A stretch of 63,028 bases of DNA, counting the filler, from Lenisia limosa (lineage: Eukaryota > Protista > Breviatea), in NCBI GenBank assembly GCA_001655205.1. It is 9 parts of 9 records of this genome, joined end to end, with 100 filler letters (N's around TTAATTAATTAA, not from the genome) between each part and the next. Parts side by side here need not be neighbours in the genome. Positions count along the whole stretch, not along the records: positions 27,566 to 49,248 come from LPNZ01007066.1; 8 more parts are not named here. One strand, 5' to 3'. Shown piece by piece: positions 27,201-47,400 of the stretch; position 1 is the first letter of the stretch; every line of letters starts with the position of its first letter. The notes below the pieces were generated by a model that had not been told where the DNA came from, ran no database searches, and saw only the letters and a list, made by a program, of their open reading frames with translations. The translations under genes were made by a program, and so were the position numbers.

Positions 27201-27861
27201 CATGTTGAGTTTCTAAAAGTATGATAACACGTCTAATCTGTGGTAACTTACTTAGGCGTTAACTACCTGTACAACAACAGAGAAGTTGCTATTTGGAACC
27301 CCTCAGCGATTATGCCAATTTACGTACTTAATAACATGTTAATTGAGTATCTGTTCTGAGCATGGTGTTATGGTTTTACGGTATGTGGTAATATACTTTT
27401 TGAGGCTCTCAAACAAATCTGCTATTGCTTGCACCCCCTTCCACTTCTATGATTGAGCCACTCGCNNNNNNNNNNNNNNNNNNNNNNNNNNNNNNNNNNN
27501 NNNNNNNNNTTAATTAATTAANNNNNNNNNNNNNNNNNNNNNNNNNNNNNNNNNNNNNNNNNNNNTCTAAACATTGTGAAGGGAAGTTCTATTTGGAACA
27601 ACAGTTTGTTGATTTTTTTTTTTTTTCCCCAGTATTGAACATCAACTTTAGCTCAAAATATATGTCAAAATACTAAAAAGCAAAATTTTTGCAAACAATC
27701 ATTTCCGTAAGGTAAAAAAAAGTCTGTAAAATGGGGGAACAAAAAGCAATACACCACACTAATACAACAAAATTTCAAATATCTACCGACAAGAAAACAA
27801 CAACTCAATATATTCAGTTTTTCGCCACTTTCTTCTTGTATTCAACCCAGATCCATATAGC

Positions 27862-28833: not shown

Positions 28834-31800
28834 ATGCTTCGTCTTGCTTCTAGTTTGAGGACTGTCGGCGTTAATGGTGCCCGTACCTACGCTAAGGGTA
28901 TGAATTAATAAAGTATTTCCACCTCTCCTGACTACACTGATATTATTGTTCGTATCTCATCTTTAGACCTTCGTTTTGGAACTGAAGGCCGTGCTGCCAT
29001 TCTTGCTGGTGTTGACAAACTCGCTGACGCTGTCCAGGTCACCCTTGGTCCCAAGGTAGGGAAACTTTGACGTTTTAAGCGTTTCTTTGAGACTTTTTGG
29101 GTTATTTGTTTTCAATAAAATAATTTCAAATGACAGATAAAGATTCACGGAATGATGTGACTGATCATCATCTTTTAGGGACGCAACGTTATCATCGAGC
29201 AGTCCTACGGCTCCCCCAAGATCACTAAGGATGGTGTTACTGTTGCTAAGTCCATCGAGGTTAGTCTAATGTCCGAATTCTCTTTCCTCACATACCTGTT
29301 CTGTCGTCATATGATATCTTTAGTTTGAGGACAAGTATGAGAACCTTGGAGCCCAGCTTGTTCGCCAAGTTGCTTCCAATGCCAACGAGGCTGCTGGTGA
29401 CGGTACCACCACCGCCACTGTCCTTGCCCGCGCTATCTATTCCGAGGGTTTGCGGGGAGGCGGATAGTTAATGTAGAGTGAAAGGCATATGGCTGGTTCT
29501 GTAACTGTACGCTTCCTTATCAGTATGCTTTTTAAACGTGATGATGAAGAGAACCAGGTTAAACCTTTAAACTCTTTTTCGGGATATTGCATCATCTAAT
29601 ATCGGATACATCTTTGCTATGTTAGCTTACATTCCAGGCTGCAAATCTGTCGCTGCTGGTGTGAACCCCATGGATCTCCGCCGCGGTATGTTGAGTACCT
29701 TTTTCATTTCCATTAGCTCCATTTCGCCAAGCTTTGACATCCCAGGTATCAACACTGCCGTTGACGCTATGGTCAAGGAGCTCAAGAACATCACCAAGCC
29801 CATTGTTTCCTCTGAGGAAATTGCCCAGGTTGGCGCGGTGGAGCTTGTCCTTTTCTTTTTTTATATTTACACCCATGCCAGAACAGCAATATTATTCTTC
29901 TTTCTTAACCCCCAAGGTTGCCACCATTTCAGCCAACGGAGACCACGACATTGGAAGCCTCATCAGCACCGCCATGGACCGTGTCGGCAAGGAGGGTGTC
30001 ATCACTGTCCAGGACGGCAAGACCGTTGACGACGAGCTTGAGGTCATTGAAGGTATCAAAGTATGCAGGTGTACTTTTTATTCATGCCCTTATTCTAATA
30101 TTCCTCTTTTTGTATATTTTGAATTCAATGGAGTGAACGGCTTCGGCCTAAAACTATCTCTTGTTTCTCCTTTCTATATTCTTCTAATTGGGTTTTAGTT
30201 CGACCGTGGCTTCATCTCCCCCTACTTCATCACCGACTCTAAGTCCCAGAAGATCGTGGGGAGGGGGAGATGGAATGGGGTATAGCATGAGTAAAGCATG
30301 ATTTTTGGTTTCCTCTATCCGCGCTGTTTTTATTATAATTATTATTTTATGGACACTCACATAAGCTATTATATTAAAAGTGGTAAAACTTATCTGGTGA
30401 GCTTTGGTTTATTCCTCCAGATCATGGAAGACCCCTCCATCATGATGGTTGAGAAGAAGGTTTCCAACATGCAGTCTATCGTGAACGTTCTTGAGGTTTG
30501 TCCTTCTTTCGTATCTTCATATCAAATTTAATAACAGAGCTATGTCTCTTAACGGGCACTCTTTTTCCAGGCTCACCCCATTTAGAAGGTCATGCAACAA
30601 CGCAAGCCCCTCCTCATCGTTGCTGAGGACGTTGATGGTGAAGCCCTCGCCACTCTCATCCTTAACAAGCTCCGCGGTACCCTCCAGGTCGGTATTGAAT
30701 CAAGTCCTGGTTTGTTGTTGATATTTTCATCTTATCTCTGAGAAATCGATTTACCAACACTCCTCTCGCACTTCAACACTCATCATCCCAATTCCTCACC
30801 CAACCCCCCCCCCCCCAGGTTGNNNNNNNNNNNNNNNNNNNNNNNNNNNNNNNNNNNNNNNNNNNNNNNNNNNNNNNNNNNNNNNNNNNNNNNNNNNNNN
30901 NNNNNNNNNNNNNNNNNNNNNNNNNNNNNNNNNNNNNNNNNNNNNNNNNNNNNNNNNNNNNNNNNNNNNNNNNNNNNNNNNNNNNNNNNNNNNNNNNGAA
31001 GCAACTGTCTTTGGGTGATTCCTCTTCTTGGACTGTGTATTGGTGCGTTTTAACCTTACGCCCCCAGGTTGCCTCCGAGGACGCTGGTCTTCCCCTCGAA
31101 GAGATGGACACCCTCCACCTCGGTACCTGCAAGAAGGTCATCATCACCAAGGACGACACTCTCTTCCTTGAGGGTGCCGGTACGCGGGAAGGGTAGTCAC
31201 ATTTGACGCGTTCCTAGCGGGTGTAGTATTCCTTCTAAGACACAGGATATGTATGATATAATTTTATACCTTTGTTTGAAGGCTACTCTGTCTCATACTA
31301 TCCACGATGAGCTCTAGAAACTTGCTTTCACCTCTTCTAATATCTCAGGATCTCCTGAGGATATCGCTGAGCGTAAGGAACAGCTTCGTGACGCTATTGC
31401 TCTCAGGTTCGCTCCTGTATTTTTTTAATGCCCTCGAGGGTTATCTCTTTATTTTGTCCTCTCATCATCAATGCATAAATTCACATTTTACCCTCCTCAG
31501 CACTTCGGAATACGAGAAGGAGAAGCTCCAGGAGCGTCTCGCCCGCATCTCCGGCGGTGTCGCTGTCATCAAGGTGCGTATTAAGGGAACAATATTTGAT
31601 GTTAATAATAAAGTACCTATTATGGATATTTTGGACAAGATTTAGTAGTGAAGTCAGATTGACTCTTGCAGGTTGGAGGAGCCTCCGAGGTTGAGGTCAA
31701 CGAGAAGAAGGACCGTGTTGACGATGCTCTTTGCGCCACTCGTGCTGCCGTTGAGGAAGGTATGCCCTCCCCCTCCCCGTCCCCGTCCCACCCTTCTTTC

Positions 31801-32693
31801 CTTTATCATCATCAGCTCCTTTTTTTTTTCTCATTGAACACCACCTTGTGATGAATCCGTTAATGGCGTTGCAGGTATTGTTCCCGGTGGTGGAGTTGCC
31901 CTCCTGAGATCCTCCGCTGTTCTCGATGATATCAAATCCGAGGTCTTCGACCGCAACATCGGTAAGCCGTAAAAAAAAATGCGGATCAGAATCAGAGGTG
32001 AAATGATTTCGCCTTTTTAGATTTTCGATCATGGCAATACTGAGAGGAGTGAAAATGTGTTCTATTTTTTTTTTTTTTTTTTTNNNNNNNNNNNNNNNNN
32101 NNNNNNNNNNNNNNNNNNNNNNNNNNNNNNNNNNNNNNNNNNNNNNNNNNNNNNNNNNNNNNNNNNNNNNNNNNNNNNNNNNNNNNNNNNNNNNNCCAAG
32201 ACCATTGCCGCCAACGCCGGCTTCGAGGGCCCCGTTGTCGTCGGCAAGCTCATTGAGTCCGACGACGCTGAGATCGGCTTCAACGCTCAAACTGGCGTGT
32301 ACGTCAACATGGTCAAGGAGGGTATCATTGATCCCACCAAGGTGAGCGGAACACCAGTTTTTTTTTCTCGTTTAACCATGATACGCTGTGCTTGTTTGCT
32401 TTATTGAATGCGATGATGACCCCTCAGGTTGTGAGAACTGCTCTTGTTGATGCTGCTTCCGTGGCTTCTCTCATGGCCACCACTGAGGCCACCATTGTTG
32501 AGGCTCCCCGCAAGGGCGGTGACCGTGAGGGGGAACTTGCAATATTGTTTTGGGCTGTATGCCCACAAATATTTATTCGCATATTGACAATCTTACGGAT
32601 CCAGTTGACCTTGGCGCCATGGCCGGAGGAATGGGCGGCATGGGCGGTATGGGTGGCATGGGTGGCATGGGTGGCATGCCTGGTATGATGTAG
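28834..32693 (+). CDS. HSP60: Mitochondrial chaperonin 60 (Cpn60/HSP60), >=19 exons
   Basis: Presequence [19 protein letters not shown]|AKD; [62 protein letters not shown]-terminal GGM repeats ending TAG 32691-32693. Visible junctions are in frame. Confidence 0.98.
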
Positions 32694-33401
32694 ATTATTT
32701 GACTGCATGTTTTCGTTTTTCTTCCTGTACGTTTGACCACTAATATATGTTTCTTTTTCCCTTCTAAAAGGTGCTGGTTCCCTTAATCGATGAATACCTT
32801 AGAACGTGGTCATAAAAATGGGTAAAAATAGTGGTGTGTATTCGAGATATCATATCATATATAGTGCATGCACATAGTTAACAAAAACCATAGAGAACAA
32901 GTTATTGTATCAATTATATCGAAGGGACACCGTTACTTTTTAATTGTTTCTTTTAGTAATAAAAAGGCAGCCTTCAGCTTGTCCAAGGCGCTTAGACCCG
33001 CGCAAGCGCAGTTCCAAACAGTCAACGAGCAAGGAATCGGGGAAATGGTAAACCGAAGTTAGCCAAATCCGCACGGACACTCCCTGCAGATCTCGTTCTC
33101 ACGCCAAGGACTCAACTCTTCCTCAGACTTGATTGGAGTACCAAAATTAAAAATGATGGTAGATGGAATAACTACTATAGAATATGATCCTAGTAAGTAT
33201 AGTCCGTTAATGACATGATGGAATGACTCCCTTTAAAAATTATAATTTGTGCCCAGTAAAAAATATGGATATACTTATTTGTTTTTTATACATATTTATA
33301 AATGATCTTTGATCTAAAATACCTTGGTCCGGTACCGGCGGTTACAGTTCAGTTCATTTCATTTAAATAAAATCTTCAAAAGTAATTCAATCACTGCAAA
33401 A

Positions 33402-34842
33402 ATGAAGCTCCTTTTCCTTCTTGCATTGATTGCTTTCGCTTTCGCCAACGATGAGATCATCAAGGCCGTCAACCAGGACAACCTCGGTTGGACTGCTGGC
33501 AAAAACCAGTATTTTGAGGTTTGATTGGAATATTTTCTTTGTACTAAACAAATTATTCATAGAAACCTTCTTTTGAATGGATTCCCACATTTTTTTTTCG
33601 AAAGAGATTTTCCGTGTTCATCTTACCCACGTAGGGTATGACCACCGAAGAAATTAAGGCTTCTCTTGGTACTTTCAAGATCGATAACCTTGAGAAATTC
33701 CTTGGCGACAAGGCTGTTAAGACTGAGGTTTGAATGGCTTTCTTGAAGGGGCATTCAGTTTAACACCTCCTAGACTGTTGAGGGACTCCCCAAGTCTTTC
33801 GACCCTCGCTCTGACGCTTGCATCCACCCCGTCCGCAACCAAGCTCAGTATGTATTATAATAACAATGTCCAAAGCTAACCCTCACAGCTGCGGTTCATG
33901 CTGGGCTTTTGCCACCTCTGAGGTTATGTCTGATCGTTTCTGCCTCGCCTCCAAGGGCAAGGTTGACGTCATTCTCTCTCCCCAGGTGTGTAACAATAGC
34001 AATTATACAATTAAAAACAATCACTTTCAGTTATTCATTCAACTTATTGTTTTTTATCTGATCACCTTCAGGCTCTTGTCTCTTGCGACAAGGGTGTTAA
34101 CCAAGGCTGCAACGGCGGTATCCCCCACCTTGCTTTCGACTACGTTGAGCTCCGCGGACTCCCCACTGAGGGCTGCTTCCCCTACGTTTCCGGTGACGGC
34201 CACGAGCCTTCTTGCTCTCACTCGTAAGCCAACTCCCTCGTGTCATTATCACACTCCTTACATTTCAATATGTTTGCTCTTGGAAGGCTATCCTTACCAG
34301 CATAGTTGCGCTGCCCACAACGAGACCCTCCACTACTACCGCGCCAAGGCCTTCAGTGTCCACACCTTCAACAACGAGAAGGCTCTCATGACCGCCCTCA
34401 TGAACGACGGACCCGTTGTCGGTGCCTTCACCGTCTACGAGGACTTCATCGTAAGCCCACTGCCGCTCTTTGGCTGCTTCTTTCGGCAATTTGAATTCAC
34501 TGCTTTAGAGCTACAAGAATGGTATCTACACCCACACCTACGGAAGCCAGCTCGGTGGTCATGCCGTCGAAATGGTATGTAACTTTGCTCTGCTTCCCCC
34601 TTTGTTGTCGTACTCATCCATTCAGGTCGGATGGAGTGAAGAGAACGGCTCTCCCTACTGGATTGTCAAGAACTCCTGGACTAAGACCTGGGGTGAGGAA
34701 GGTTACTTCCGCATTGCCCGTGGTACTTCTGGCACTGGCATTGACACCGGGTGAGAAGGGTTACTTGCTGTCTGTTGTCATATCTGATAATTTTGATTAT
34801 TATTCACCCCTTAGCGCCTGCGCTGCCACCCCCCACCTCTAA
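33402..34842 (+). CDS. Cathepsin B-like cysteine protease (papain C1A), complete, 9 exons
   Basis: Exons 33402-33518, 33635-33727, 33774-33847, 33889-33985, 34072-34223, 34306-34450, 34509-34574, 34626-34750, 34815-34842 splice in frame. Signal peptide, QAHCGSCWAF, GCNGG, GGHAV, KNSW. Confidence 0.97.
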
Positions 34843-40930: not shown

Positions 40931-41967
40931 AAGAATAGTATAAAGTTACCTGACATTCAGGATAATAGCATAGAGTGGAGTCTTAGACAATATGTTGGAG
41001 TCATCGAAGGGAAGGTGTTACGCGTTTGTACCCAAGAAATAGAAGAGTCAGTGCAAGCTCTTTCGATATTTCTACGATATCAGCTTTATTCAGCTTTCCC
41101 ATAGGTACAACAGTTGCTTTCCATCCATTCATCCTGTTTTCAAATTGGCAAGGCTGTTGAAAAAGCGCCAAATCCCCCCCCCCCCNNNNNNNNNNNNNNN
41201 NNNNNNNNNNNNNNNNNNNNNNNNNNNNNNNNNNNNTTTTCGATGGATTATGTAGGCCTTAGTTTGGCTAAGGTATCTTTTGAGGGTCGAAGCACTCAGT
41301 ATGCCCCATTTTTGGTATTCACATTAAAAACAAATACACTCTGTGTTGTTATATTTCTGAAGATTTTGCCAATGGAGGGACTGGTGAGCGTTGAGGAGAT
41401 GTTTGGCTGTGAGTCACAACAAAAGGCGACGTTCCGGCCGCTCTTTCGGAGACCAGAACTCTAATTTGAATTGTTACAATGTTTTGGATATCAATTTCGT
41501 CGGAAGGCAATGGTATTTCAAGGAAATTGAAGAATTTTATTATTAGTATAAAAAACATAAACAATTACTAATACTTTATCCAACGAGAAAAGAGGGTGAA
41601 ATTTCACGTTTTCTGGGTTAAAAGAGGTATATGCCACCCAGGAATGCTGGGAATCGTACCAAGAATATTTGCGAGAAAAAAACAACAATTAAAAGCGGGG
41701 TTAAAGTTAAATGGCCTTTTTTGGATTTTTCTTAATATTATCAATTCTAACAATTTTTCCAGAGATACCCATTTTCACTCTTCTAAAAGACTAAAAGACC
41801 GCTGAGAAAGGAAAAAAGGGGGATGTGTGCGAAAAGCTTTATATAAGTTATAAGTGTTGTTTGGAAACGGGTTAGGCGATTGACAACTCTTAAATGAAGA
41901 GAACAGAGAGACAAGTAAAAAGAAGGGTGATCACAAAAGAAGAAAGAGAATTCCTTTTTGTAAAAAA

Positions 41968-42005: not shown

Positions 42006-42039
42006 AAAAACAGTCTGGAAACGATCTTAAGAGTAAAAA

Positions 42040-42215
42040 AAGACAGAAAAAAAAGGAAGAAGGGAAAGGAAGCAAAAAAGACAAAAAAAGGAAGAAGGGA
42101 AAGGAAGCAAAAAGGAAGAAGGGAAAGGAAGCAAAAAGGAAGAAGGGAAAGGAAGCAAAAAAGACAAAAAAAAGAAGCAAAAAGACAAAGAGGCAAAAAG
42201 ACAAAGAGGCAAAAA
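42040..42215. repeat. Purine-rich short tandem repeats between tRNA-Gly and the tRNA fragment
   Basis: AAAAAGGAAGAAGGGAAAGGAAGC (24 bp) about 4 times and AAAAAGACAAAGAGGC (16 bp) twice. Confidence 0.85.
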
Positions 42216-42286
42216 TGCATCGCCCGGGAATCGAACCCGGGTCGCGACGATGGCAACGTCGAATTCTACCACTGAACCAGCGATGC
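42216..42286 (-). tRNA. tRNA-Gly(GCC)
   Basis: GCATCGC TG GTTC AGTGGTA GAAT T CGACG TTGCCAT CGTCG CGAC CCGGG TTCGATT CCCGG GCGATGC A; full cloverleaf, followed by T5. Confidence 0.97.
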
Positions 42287-42339
42287 TACAAAAACAAGTA
42301 AGTAATTTTCATTTCCGATAATAGTTTGTTTCAGAAATT

Positions 42340-44090
42340 CTTCCACCTCGCATTTGCTCCTCCCTATTGTCCACTCCGCCGCCGCTCTCCTATGTATCTT
42401 TTTTATCTTTGTTTTACTGAATGTTTTTACGGTAAATACATTTTTTGTCCTTTCAAAAGCTTTTCAGTTGATCATGAATGCGCTCTTATTCCCATCTCAG
42501 GAGACCAAGAAGAGAGCCATTTCGGCTTGCCGCGACACCTGTTGACCTTTCTCGCCTGCCACCACCAGAGCCTGGCAGCAGGAATCTGCCCTTGCCTCAA
42601 GGAGGACATGAGATCCCTCCTCGACTCCANNNNNNNNNNCTCTTTCATTCTCGATGCAAGTTTTTTCGGAAATATCGAAAAAGCTGCCGCTATCCACCCG
42701 GACACCATCTCCCCACACTGCCCTCCACACCAGGAATCTCTCCGCCACCTGCTCTCCGTTTGCCAACATCCAACAATGGTCAACTTAAGGCGGGAACAGA
42801 GACCAAGAAGAGAGCCATTTCGGCTTGCCGCGACACCTGTTGGCCTTTCTCGCCTGCCNNNNNNNNNNNNNNNNNNNNNNNNNNNNNNNNNNNNNNNNNN
42901 NNNNNNNNNNNNNNNNGCCAAATGCCATCCTCGACCACTCACTCCGGGTCTGGCAAACCCGCTGTGACCTCTTGGAGGAGGGGGCTGGCCCTCCCAGCAG
43001 ACCAGTTGCGGTCCCTAAAAGCCCCCACATATCCGTCGTTCCGGGAGTACCTGACGTACCTCACCTCCCACCACCACCTTTGTCTTCCAACCTCACCCAT
43101 AACCACCCTATCAACTTGACCTTTTCTTTCCCTCATACCTCCTTCGATTTACAACAATGTGATAGGTGAAACCCATAAAACGGTTTGCACTCCAAGTGCC
43201 CAAATCACCCGCCGCGTCACCACAGAAGCAATCACCATCCCGCCGCCTCGCTCTAGTCTGTTTACCCGCTGCCCAGACCGCCCACCGCTCCGCTCCAAAA
43301 GAGATCACCCTCCCTCCAGTCCGTCCCTGTCCACTCCGCCGCCACTGAGAGTGGAGATAGNNNNNNNNNNACAGACCTTGATCCCTGGGCCCTCGCCAAC
43401 ACCTGTCCTACCATTGTCGTACTCCCTATCACCTTCATTTTCACCTTTGCCACCCCCATCACCTCCAATTCCTAAACCTCTACCGCGCAGCCTCCGACCC
43501 CGGACACCCACGGACATCGACTTTGACATCGCCAGCGGGGTCATCACGGGCAACCTCACCACCCGCCCGATCATGACCTTCCATGGCCCCACATGTCCGT
43601 CGTTCCGGGCGTACCTGACGTACCTCACCTCTCACCACCTCACTAACCTCACCTTTGTTCCAGCCTCACCCATAACCACCCTACCAACTTTACCCCTTCT
43701 TTCCCTCACCTCCACCTATTCGATTTACAACAATTGAATATCATCCGCCGCCGCTCTCCTATGTATCGTTTTTATCTTTGTTTTACTGAATGTTTTTTTG
43801 ATAAATATATTTTTTGTCCTTTCAAAAAAAACGCGTATTTAACGAGTATAGCCCCTTCATCGCAACTAGATCCCTTCTTGACTCGAAGCCCTCAGCAAAC
43901 TGCCATTTCTCCTCCTTTATACCCACTGCAGATGTGGTAAGCCCGTTGACCTGCTTGAGGAAGGTGCCATCAGTGTCAGACCACCATCAGTACCACCACC
44001 ACCCGACCATGAACTTCAAAGGCCCTACATGTCCATCGTACCTCACCTCCCACCATCTTAACAACTACACCTTCCTCTTCCGTCCGTAAA
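42340..44090 (+). mobile_element. Stack of decayed, 5'-truncated non-LTR (L1-clade-like) retrotransposon 3' ends
   Basis: C-rich island with internal duplications. Translation shows (S>C)PHCPPHQESLRHLLSVC (zf-RVT-like CCHC, 42710-42763) and RVWQTRCDLL (WxxRN/C, ~42945-42975). A shared ~85-nt 3' UTR ending in an A-run occurs at 42376-42457 and 43745-43831. Confidence 0.65.
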
Positions 44091-44403: not shown

Positions 44404-47400
44404 TCACCTGCTCTTTACAACAGAAAAGTTCAAAACGCTCACCTCGACACCAAATGAGATTCGTTTGGAAGAGTCTGGAGGGCATCCTGAATTGGTCTGG
44501 GGTGCACAACAATTTCTACAGCGTAATCTCCGAATCCAATCTAAAAATGTAGCAGATGAACACTCGTTAAAGCCCCACTCCCTCACTTTCAATAAATCGT
44601 CGTTCATGTTGCAGGGTGGCTTCTCTGAATGCCACTCGGATGTTTGGAACATTCGTTTGCCTGGTACCTGTATCGTCACAACATAATGGCAAAGGAAATC
44701 ACTTACAATTTCCTTCTTCGCCCTTCTTAAGATACTGTGCCCCGAGCCAGTGAGATTTTGTCACGTGGTCAAAGCCTGACTGCAGGACACTGTTTCGAGC
44801 TGATGGGGTAAGTGCACGGAAATACAAGACATTATGCAAACATCAAATAACATATAAGAGGACAATTGACAACTTCATGTTCACCAACCAATTTCGCAAA
44901 TGTCAGTACTGGAGAGTCGCCAAAGCTGAGAAGCAAAGGAGTACTCCTGAAGCGTAAAGGTCCAAAATATACCGAGTAATCTTGTTATCAAGAGCAAGCG
45001 CGGCATCCAGAAGAACAACATACTTCCATGAGGGGTTCTTTTGTGAGATGGAACTGAAGAGGATCGTCGGTGGACAACGAAATGTTTAGTCCGCGTCCAA
45101 AGAATTGCTAAACAGTAAGTCTGGGGAGTTACAAGTGGGTTGGCATATCCGTGTTTTTTTCGATATCCTAGACTTTACCGTATCTTGTTTTCAAAAAGAT
45201 AATCCACAATTGGCACAAGTCGAGCATACTGGGAAGGGGCTTTTGTTGAAGGCTACAAAGAGTTTGTTGTTGGAGAGGGGTGACATGGCAATTCCAATCT
45301 GCTCTACATAGTATCTAAACAATGAAATAATGCGCAAAGATAAAACAGAATCATCAAATTACTCACAGGTATTGCAGAACTGGCGATCTGTGGAGGTTCA
45401 GTCCGTGGTTGATTCCACCTGAGGTCAACTATGGGGGGGGGGGGGTAATATAAGAATGTACATTGTCGATTTTCTTAGTGAGAGCTTACGAACGCAGCAC
45501 CCAAATGGTCCACAGCACCAGCCTCTCCAGAATGGGGACGGAGAATGAATGGCGCTATTGCGTCAGTGCAAATTCTCGATTTTAAACATGATAAAACAGT
45601 ACTTCACGAAGCTTACACAGTTGGGCCTTCTCCCTCATGAAGTTCAAGGTGTAGAGGTTCATGCACATGTCTAAAGTGTAACGAGGGACGAATATCAATG
45701 AAACACTCACAACAGAGGTAGTAGGAGTATGGCGGGTTCTTTCTCATCGCCCATTCCTCAGGGATAGGGAACTTTTGGAATATTTTCGGTTCTGCTTGGC
45801 TTTCATCATCCACTGAGTCAAAGGCCACAACCTGGGGGTGCACGGTGAAAACGTGGGATTATTGATATCCCGGACCCTTGACTTCAGAAGCAAACCCCTA
45901 TCATGCCAAACTAACATGAAGCAAGAATCGATAGAGGTTCGGGTCCACTTGGGGGTTTGCAGTCACTTCGAAGAGAGGCTCAAATATGTCTAGAAAAGTG
46001 AACACGGAATCAAGACTTTGACTGATAAACCTGAAAAAGAAAAGGTCCTATTCTAATTGATGAGACAGAAGCCAAGTCCCCCACTTACTGGCAAGCATTT
46101 CCTCAAAGTTCTTAATAATCCCTGATCTGAAGAGTTCAAAAAGAAGAAGAGCAACAAACCTCTTGTAGATGTGGTACAGCCTCGGGACCTGAATGACCCA
46201 TCGAACCTATGCAATGAGCAAAGAAATGACATTTTATACAATGAGGAAAGAAATGCCATTTTATGCCACTTGCAGCCACGCATACATTTTCACTGTACAA
46301 GTTGTTGTCAGCAAACCACTTTGCCAACTTTGTCCACTCATCACGTGACCTGAAATGTAACAAGAGCGTCCAATGATTGTGGTTCCCCCCCCCCCCTTNN
46401 NNNNNNNNNNNNNNNNNNNNNNNNNNNNNNNNNNNNNNNNNNNNNNNNNNNNNNNNNNNNNNNNNNNNNNNGTGTTGTGATAAAATGGAGTTTTTTTGGT
46501 ACCGAAGTGAAACCCACCGTCCATAGATGCTGATTCGATACTCCGCCATTTGGTACTTATTGGCAGCATGATCAGCAAGCACTTCCTTGGTGATTTCTGC
46601 AAGGTACTTCCCTAAGTGGTAAATCCGTCTCTGCCTTCGTGATGTTACCTTGAATGAAATTGTCCGTTTTGAGGAAGATTTCTCTGAGAAGACTCACGCC
46701 AATGGGGTTGTATCTGAATAGTGAACTGTCAGCCTCAGTAAAGATTTTTTAAAAATCCAATAGGACACAGGAGCTCAAATATTTTGGGGTATTCATAGAT
46801 CAGTTTATTTCTACCTGGAATTGAAGACATCGAATCGTTGGAATGTTGATTTGTCCGCCTGTGTTCGTCAAAGTAAGGGCTTTTGGGATGAGGAAAATTG
46901 CCAAAAGGAAAATCTATTGTGATTCGAAATCATCCAAAACCCCCTCTCACGTGCATGCCAAGATGGTCGACACTCAAATCAAAGGGGTTGATTTCAAGGT
47001 TTTTAAAGACCTGGGGGATGAATATCAAACGTAAAACAAAATATCTGTGATCCCATATCATATTGATTATAGTCAGGAACCAAAAACTCACAAAAACTCA
47101 CCTCATCAAGGGTTATTTCACGGTTTTCGTGTTTCTAGACAGTCAGTTTGAAACATAAGATCAGCCCTACCGTTCCATTTTCTTTGTCCTCCCCGATCTC
47201 AAACGCCACCACGTCATCTCCATTATTCTTCGCTTTTCTCTTCATAAATCTGGGAATCAAGAATGAAGCAATGATATAATACAACACAGTTGAAGGCCTA
47301 TTGCATTTCATACCTGAGAAGGTGCTTTTGGTTCATACAGGCTGAATGGTGGACATGAGTGTCGACTTTACGAACGTTGTAGAAGTCTCGGTGAGGAACA

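Follow-up and report, generated by a model that had tools for sequence, protein, structure and literature searches.

Integration beside tRNA genes is the textbook case of how a transposon can persist where genes are densely packed and yet not kill its host. Among non-LTR retrotransposons, it has been documented only in the social amoebae, in the elements TRE5, TRE3, NLTR-A and NLTR-B. TRE5 elements insert 44–54 bp upstream of the tRNA coding sequence and in the opposite orientation, and NLTR-B of Polysphondylium (Heterostelium) pallidum, which is unrelated to the TREs and carries RNase H downstream of its reverse transcriptase (RT), inserts 39–64 bp upstream of tRNA genes. Among the degenerate RNase H-bearing LINEs of Physarum, Winckler and colleagues saw no tRNA targeting; from a different host, these LINEs show that such elements need not be targeted. 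Zorro3 of Candida albicans, an L1-type LINE, integrates into poly(A) tracts.

The locus analyzed here lies in a 21.7-kb piece (positions 27566–49248) of the window, by which we mean the whole stretch of 63,028 nt that was analyzed. The piece is a gap-rich draft, gene-dense and intron-rich, with about 41% GC. Its sole tRNA, on which ARAGORN and Rfam agree, is a tRNA-Gly(GCC) on the minus strand at 42216–42286 (Rfam RF00005, 61 bits), apparently intact and with a T5 terminator directly at its 3' side (A5 at 42211–42215 on the plus strand). An AT-rich spacer of 48 nt (42287–42334) leads from the tRNA 5' end to a C-rich island on the plus strand (42335–44090), which adjoins the only tRNA of the piece and is itself the one stretch there that resembles a repeat or TE; the GC skew is −0.25 to −0.48 over 42566–44065 and about 0 in the flanks. 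An earlier note had placed the tRNA 5' end at 42286 on the minus strand and the start of the island near 42340, roughly 50–55 bp upstream and reading away from the tRNA. Both tRNA searches, the GC skew and the onset of homology at 42340–42342 agree with that picture, and the first copy in the island begins 48–55 bp from the tRNA 5' end in divergent orientation at this one locus. It is very probable, in our judgment, that the island is a stack of LINE tails, in which at least five decayed and 5'-truncated 3' ends of one retroelement family follow one another head to tail in the same orientation. Whether position-specific integration at the tRNA gene lies behind this stack is, as an overall explanation, a question on which we are evenly divided.

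The neighbors of the island are housekeeping genes (HSP60, U3, cathepsin B-like and AMP deaminase). The mitochondrial-type HSP60/chaperonin gene (29571–32685, plus strand) has many short exons, introns of about 55–80 nt and several assembly gaps; so many short exons would speak against a dictyostelid as the host. Between it and the gene for a cathepsin B-like protease of the papain family (33815–34839, plus strand; Pfam PF00112) lies a full-length U3 snoRNA gene (32969–33206, minus strand; Rfam RF00012, 54 bits), which no element fragment adjoins. The best homolog of the cathepsin B-like gene is a transcript of Lenisia limosa (Breviatea) with 46% identity, the next reaching about 30%; this match is the one hint at the taxonomy of the host. 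Physarum polycephalum, whose assembly is likewise full of gaps, homopolymer trouble and introns, was considered as the host and rejected: the tRNA-Gly(GCC) of the piece is missing from the tRNA table of that genome, and the Gly-GCC sequence given in the table differs in its anticodon arm. Exons of the AMP deaminase gene occupy 44884–46693 on the minus strand (Pfam PF19326), so that the island is flanked by the tRNA on one side and by the 3' end of AMP deaminase on the other. Host-gene exons were searched one by one rather than as assembled spliced models, and according to Pfam the 30 other ORF segments of the piece hold host genes only and no TE domain. Directly downstream of the tRNA, abutting its terminator, is a purine-rich minisatellite (42028–42215) composed of a 24-nt unit, AAAAAGGAAGAAGGGAAAGGAAGC, in 3.2 copies at 100% identity and a 16-nt unit in 2.8 copies; no relation between it and the island was found.

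The island is built from repeats that have no occurrence elsewhere in the 21.7-kb piece. A 3'UTR with an A-run occurs at 42375–42458 and again at 43744–43827 (94% identity over 84 nt, E = 5e-32), and a tail block at 43023–43158 recurs at 43587–43734 (82%, E = 5e-38) and, in degenerate form and with an 18-nt deletion, at 43994–44073. The block WQTRCDLLEEGA is found at 42917–43004 and 43895–43983, with an alignment score of 43 against a shuffle maximum of 33, and a further 60-nt pair, absent from the earlier list, joins 42501–42560 to 42799–42858 at 98%. Alignment thus upholds the twofold 3'UTR with its A-run and the tail block near 43024, near 43587 and in a degenerate third copy, as previously proposed. 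Two other proposals stand in part. The WQTRCDLLEEGA block does occur twice, but the frame in which it had been read is probably not the coding one, judging from the open frame of the relative described below, in which the block reads SGSGKP..RRGLA..DQL. Likewise, the CCHC-like motif noted at 42710 is homologous to a full C-x2-C, H-x4-C arrangement in that relative, but the copy in the window lacks the second Cys, which a 7-residue deletion has taken out.

The relative was obtained by an exhaustive HMMER protein search among 1.84 billion representatives, with the frame that contains the CCHC-like stretch as the query. The search returned one protein only, P0001, which has 399 residues and comes from a 15.8-kb ENA contig. 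P0001 is a single open frame that runs from an AT-rich leader through VKAH..NNRADILAKKA and about 110 other residues to an intact CCHC knuckle (C-x2-C-x10-ESLRH-x4-C), followed by the blocks ETKKRAISA, DPSSTP, SGSGKP..DQL and FVFQPHP in that order. VKAH..NNRADILAKKA is a motif with which RNase H domains usually end. The blocks are colinear with the island, with matches of up to E = 6e-32. By tblastn, residues 202–248 of P0001 match 42686–42805, the CCHC-like stretch (74% identity); residues 253–320 match 42468–42629 (57%, E = 3.5e-18); residues 264–385 match 42799–43077; and residues 376–399 match 43025–43099. Relative to P0001, the copies in the window carry frameshifts, stops and deletions.

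Profile searches gave less. Pfam yielded no significant match in six island ORFs or in P0001, and in particular none to APE, RT or zf-RVT, the same outcome as in the earlier note, to which no RT or endonuclease had been visible; hmmscan of P0001 and the window ORFs at E values up to 10 found neither RNase H (PF00075) nor zf-RVT (PF13966). RT and endonuclease (APE/REL) were found neither in the island nor in P0001, nor in any other ORF of the piece; every copy seen begins downstream of where an RT would lie and does not reach the endonuclease part of an element, so that this blank is no evidence against either domain. A PDB sequence search with P0001 produced nothing significant, the only match being a chance one to NDT80. 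The look-alikes of P0001 in the ESM Atlas are mostly RNase_H and zf-RVT clusters with scores of 0.91–0.92, which is a lead and not proof. Neither P0001 nor the downstream portion of the window ORF in its true frame retrieved a relative by word search, an exact 22-mer of the 3'UTR had no occurrence in the JGI metagenomes, and locus searches based on P0001 found nothing in metagenome or viral collections. With these word searches empty and a single relative found among 1.84 billion representatives, the family seems to be decayed and low in copy number.

We infer the LINE identity from motifs and from this one relative. The reading of the conserved part as RNase H plus zf-RVT is a lead drawn from the motifs, the colinearity, the A-tailed and 5'-truncated anatomy and the language-model look-alikes, and on this reading the final part of ORF2 in this family would be an RNase H-like domain followed by a CCHC knuckle and a C-rich tail. 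The copies themselves share a 3' end with A4 or A8 (42375–42458 and 43744–43831) and are variably truncated at the 5' end, which is the combination by which LINEs are recognized; on the P0001 map, their 5' ends fall in the last codons (copy 1), at about residue 253 (copy 2a) and at about residue 315 (copy 4). Two other element classes were considered and rejected. A tRNA-derived SINE does not fit the tRNA, which lies on the opposite strand, has a full-tRNA score and has its own terminator. An LTR element does not fit the island, which has no LTR pair, whose fragments close with A-runs and whose CCHC is spaced unlike an integrase HHCC finger.

At least five fragments can be distinguished on the P0001 map, all on the plus strand, which bears out and extends the earlier count of at least three to four in the same orientation. 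Copy 1, nearest to the tRNA (42335–42458), comprises the last codons of the ORF, the 3'UTR and A4. Its segment 42342–42398 aligns to 43711–43767, clear homology begins at 42340–42342, and the unmatched AAATT at 42335–42339 may represent extra nucleotides of its 5' junction. Copy 2a (42468–42629) covers residues of about 253–320 of P0001 with two in-frame stops and runs into an assembly gap at 42630, its 3' part being absent from the assembly. Copy 2b (42640–43360) extends from the CCHC region to a long 3'UTR and has lost both ends in gaps; in order, it contains the degenerate CCHC stretch (42686–42805), an 18-codon deletion, the 60-nt block, a gap (42859–42916), SGSGKP..DQL, the tail and the long 3'UTR. 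A C-rich segment follows at 43371–43545 on the plus strand, whose alignments to the copies and to P0001 are no better than those of shuffles; it is a part of copy 3 that has diverged or else a piece of something different. Copy 3 (about 43546–43831) consists of the tail block, a stop codon, a short 3'UTR variant and A8. Copy 4, the farthest from the tRNA (about 43868–44090), runs from about residue 315 of P0001 to the conserved stop and is colinear with copies 2a and 2b; it is the most decayed, with the 18-nt deletion, without the canonical 3'UTR and with an A-rich run at its end. Between the end of the ORF and the canonical 3'UTR, copy 2b has about 180 nt (43157–43335) that are absent from copy 3, and the long-form junction is also present in copy 1, where 42358–42386 matches 43320–43346. 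The aligned copies therefore point to a family with long and short 3'UTR variants.

The position of these fragments is best explained, as a single explanation, by targeting of the tRNA or of the Pol III complex on it, a reading that for this one locus we hold at or a little under even confidence. Most likely, the stack would have been produced by position-specific integration of one non-LTR family of the poly(A) type, leaving dead-on-arrival 3' fragments. The ribonucleoprotein of the element would recognize the Pol III pre-initiation complex (TFIIIB/TFIIIC) on the tRNA gene, and a nick about 48 bp upstream of the tRNA would prime reverse transcription, so that a new copy would always read away from the tRNA. 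Each new insertion would fall between the tRNA and the earlier copy, and older copies would shift outward. Two observations bear on this reconstructed order of insertions and on the role it gives to the Pol III complex. The first is the hexamer TTTCAG, which ends the spacer at 42329–42334 and occurs again at 42462–42467, past the A-run of copy 1 and just before copy 2a begins. The pair is a candidate target-site duplication of copy 1, though weak evidence at 6 nt in length and with five unmatched nucleotides after its 5' member. If it is one, a distance of exactly 48 bp is left between copy 2a and the tRNA once copy 1 and one TTTCAG are removed; copy 1 would then have struck the same spot later, and two successive insertions would have occurred at equal distance. 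The second is the decay of the copies, the distal one being the most decayed, which fits the prediction of proximal insertion and outward displacement.

The closest competitor keeps the same LINE family and removes Pol III targeting from it: the element would insert, like Zorro3, at the A-runs or sequences of its earlier copies, and the proximity of the tRNA would be coincidental. Zorro3 provides the precedent of poly(A) tracts as integration sites, and every distal copy in the island starts 9–36 nt past the A-run of the proximal one. P0001 also hints at a second stack. Its first 25 residues are compatible with a translated 3'UTR and A-run, the score being reached by 2/300 and 14/300 shuffles, and the P0001 locus is therefore probably a stack as well, one in whose 105-nt upstream flank no tRNA is seen; such a stack would equally fit an element that targets itself or poly(A). 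Furthermore, the present locus is a sample of one, picked in the earlier note for its tRNA, and the adjacency may be due to chance. Insertion into A-runs nevertheless accounts less well than targeting for the hexamer, the T-rich flank and the age order. Copy 2a originally abutted the T-rich spacer and not an A-run; a spacer-derived TTTCAG at the junction of copies 1 and 2a is expected under tRNA targeting and not under insertion into tails; and the distal place of the most decayed copy is an order that insertion into tails would not produce. In addition, the odds of a chance edge at 48–55 bp in the right orientation are roughly 1 in 1000, given the intergenic space of the piece. On balance, we think this alternative unlikely.

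Less likely still, and in our view improbable, is that the stack is largely a product of assembly, in which dispersed repeat contigs were scaffolded across three gaps and the true locus holds one or two fragments. The gaps themselves lend this some weight, since colinearity is broken at the two of 10 N. At 42630–42639, the left side ends at residue 320 of P0001 and the right side restarts near residue 187, so that one copy must end and another begin within the gap. At 43361–43370, the left side stops inside the long 3'UTR variant and the right side is the unmatched C-rich segment; just before this gap is a palindrome (43330–43355, with arms TCCACTC at 43330–43336 and GAGTGGA at 43349–43355). 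Small palindromes are common at chimeric contig ends, and this one may mark such an end. The third gap (42859–42916, 58 N) is colinear, copies 2a and 4 predicting about 77–84 missing nt. The internal contigs are just 219–444 bp long, and many gaps of the piece adjoin homopolymer runs. With junctions hidden in two of the three gaps, copy number and order partly depend on scaffolding. Against a mere assembly product, the tRNA, the spacer, copy 1 and the start of copy 2a form one uninterrupted sequence, and copies 3 and 4 form another that continues through unique flank into the AMP deaminase gene. Two stacked pairs, with at least four fragments between them, are therefore independent of scaffolding. 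A 54-nt indel moreover separates copies 2a and 2b, which are therefore not one copy assembled twice. Elsewhere in the piece, gaps at 30805–30822, 32031–32083, 41114–41236 and 46300–46400 are flanked by homopolymers (C12, A-runs and G-runs); this suggests that the reads or the assembly failed at homopolymers, and gap sizes are therefore unreliable across the piece.

That the island is no retroelement at all, and instead C-rich low-complexity or minisatellite-like intergenic DNA or the decayed exons of a duplicated host gene, would agree with the absence of Pfam, PDB and RT matches, with translations rich in Pro, Ser and Thr, and with the unmatched segment at 43371–43545, but is very improbable given units that exceed 100 nt, are complex and non-tandem and share an AT-rich 3'UTR with an A-run at its end, and given that the colinear P0001, on another contig, shows VKAH..N..AD.LAK and C-x2-C..H-x4-C, as the ends of LINE ORF2 typically do.

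Returning to targeting as the preferred reading, we propose tentatively, and with somewhat less than even confidence, that a LINE lineage bearing RNase H in a non-dictyostelid, intron-rich eukaryote independently came to integrate as TRE5 does, about 48 bp upstream of tRNA genes. If true, this would be the first non-LTR retrotransposon outside Dictyostelia to target the Pol III complex, going by reviews of the field, and one more lineage that has converged on this 'safe' site. It would support the view that the upstream edge of the TFIIIB footprint is a generic and repeatedly found docking site for target-primed reverse transcription, and it would provide a second system for finding out which protein of the element reads the Pol III complex. 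Should the adjacency be coincidental, what remains is an ordinary group of dead LINE tails.

The comparison with described elements can be made on target choice, architecture and geometry. The target choice of Zorro3 would likewise set copies beside the A-runs of earlier ones; Zorro3, however, has poly(A) on both flanks and no tRNA association, whereas the proximal flank of the island is the T-rich spacer of the tRNA. In architecture, the RNase H-bearing LINE clades (I, Tad1, LOA and R1-like) have a CCHC of the zf-RVT type at the C-terminus of ORF2, as P0001 does; this likeness comes from motifs and from the ESM Atlas look-alikes, and a clade assignment needs an RT. We know of no tRNA association in these clades. 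NLTR-B, likened here by its description, has an RNase H domain and lies upstream of tRNA genes, as the island element does of its one tRNA, whereas the island element has its RNase H-like end followed by a CCHC knuckle and resides in a different host. In geometry, the nearest match is TRE5-A (DRE) of Dictyostelium discoideum, an L1-clade element with the same distance range and the same opposite orientation to the tRNA. TRE5-A is often 5'-truncated with an oligo(A) tail, and the copies in the island are likewise 5'-truncated and A-tailed. Repeated insertions of TRE5-A at one tRNA give head-to-tail arrays. There are nevertheless distinct differences between the two. The first is architectural, as compared through its description: ORF2 of TRE5-A is APE–RT–ZF without RNase H, whereas the island element has an RNase H-like motif, and no sequence similarity to TRE5-A was found, the exhaustive search with the CCHC region giving P0001 only. 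The second lies in the host, which here is intron-rich with about 41% GC, unlike the dictyostelids. The third is the standing of the targeting, which has been proven experimentally for TRE5 and here is deduced from one locus. The earlier suggestion of a TRE5-A-like LINE is accordingly retained for its geometry and for a stack of the poly(A) type. Kinship with TRE5-A through the L1 clade is unlikely because the element carries the RNase H-like motif, and, of the two origins that had been offered for it, 'independent' fits better than 'related'.
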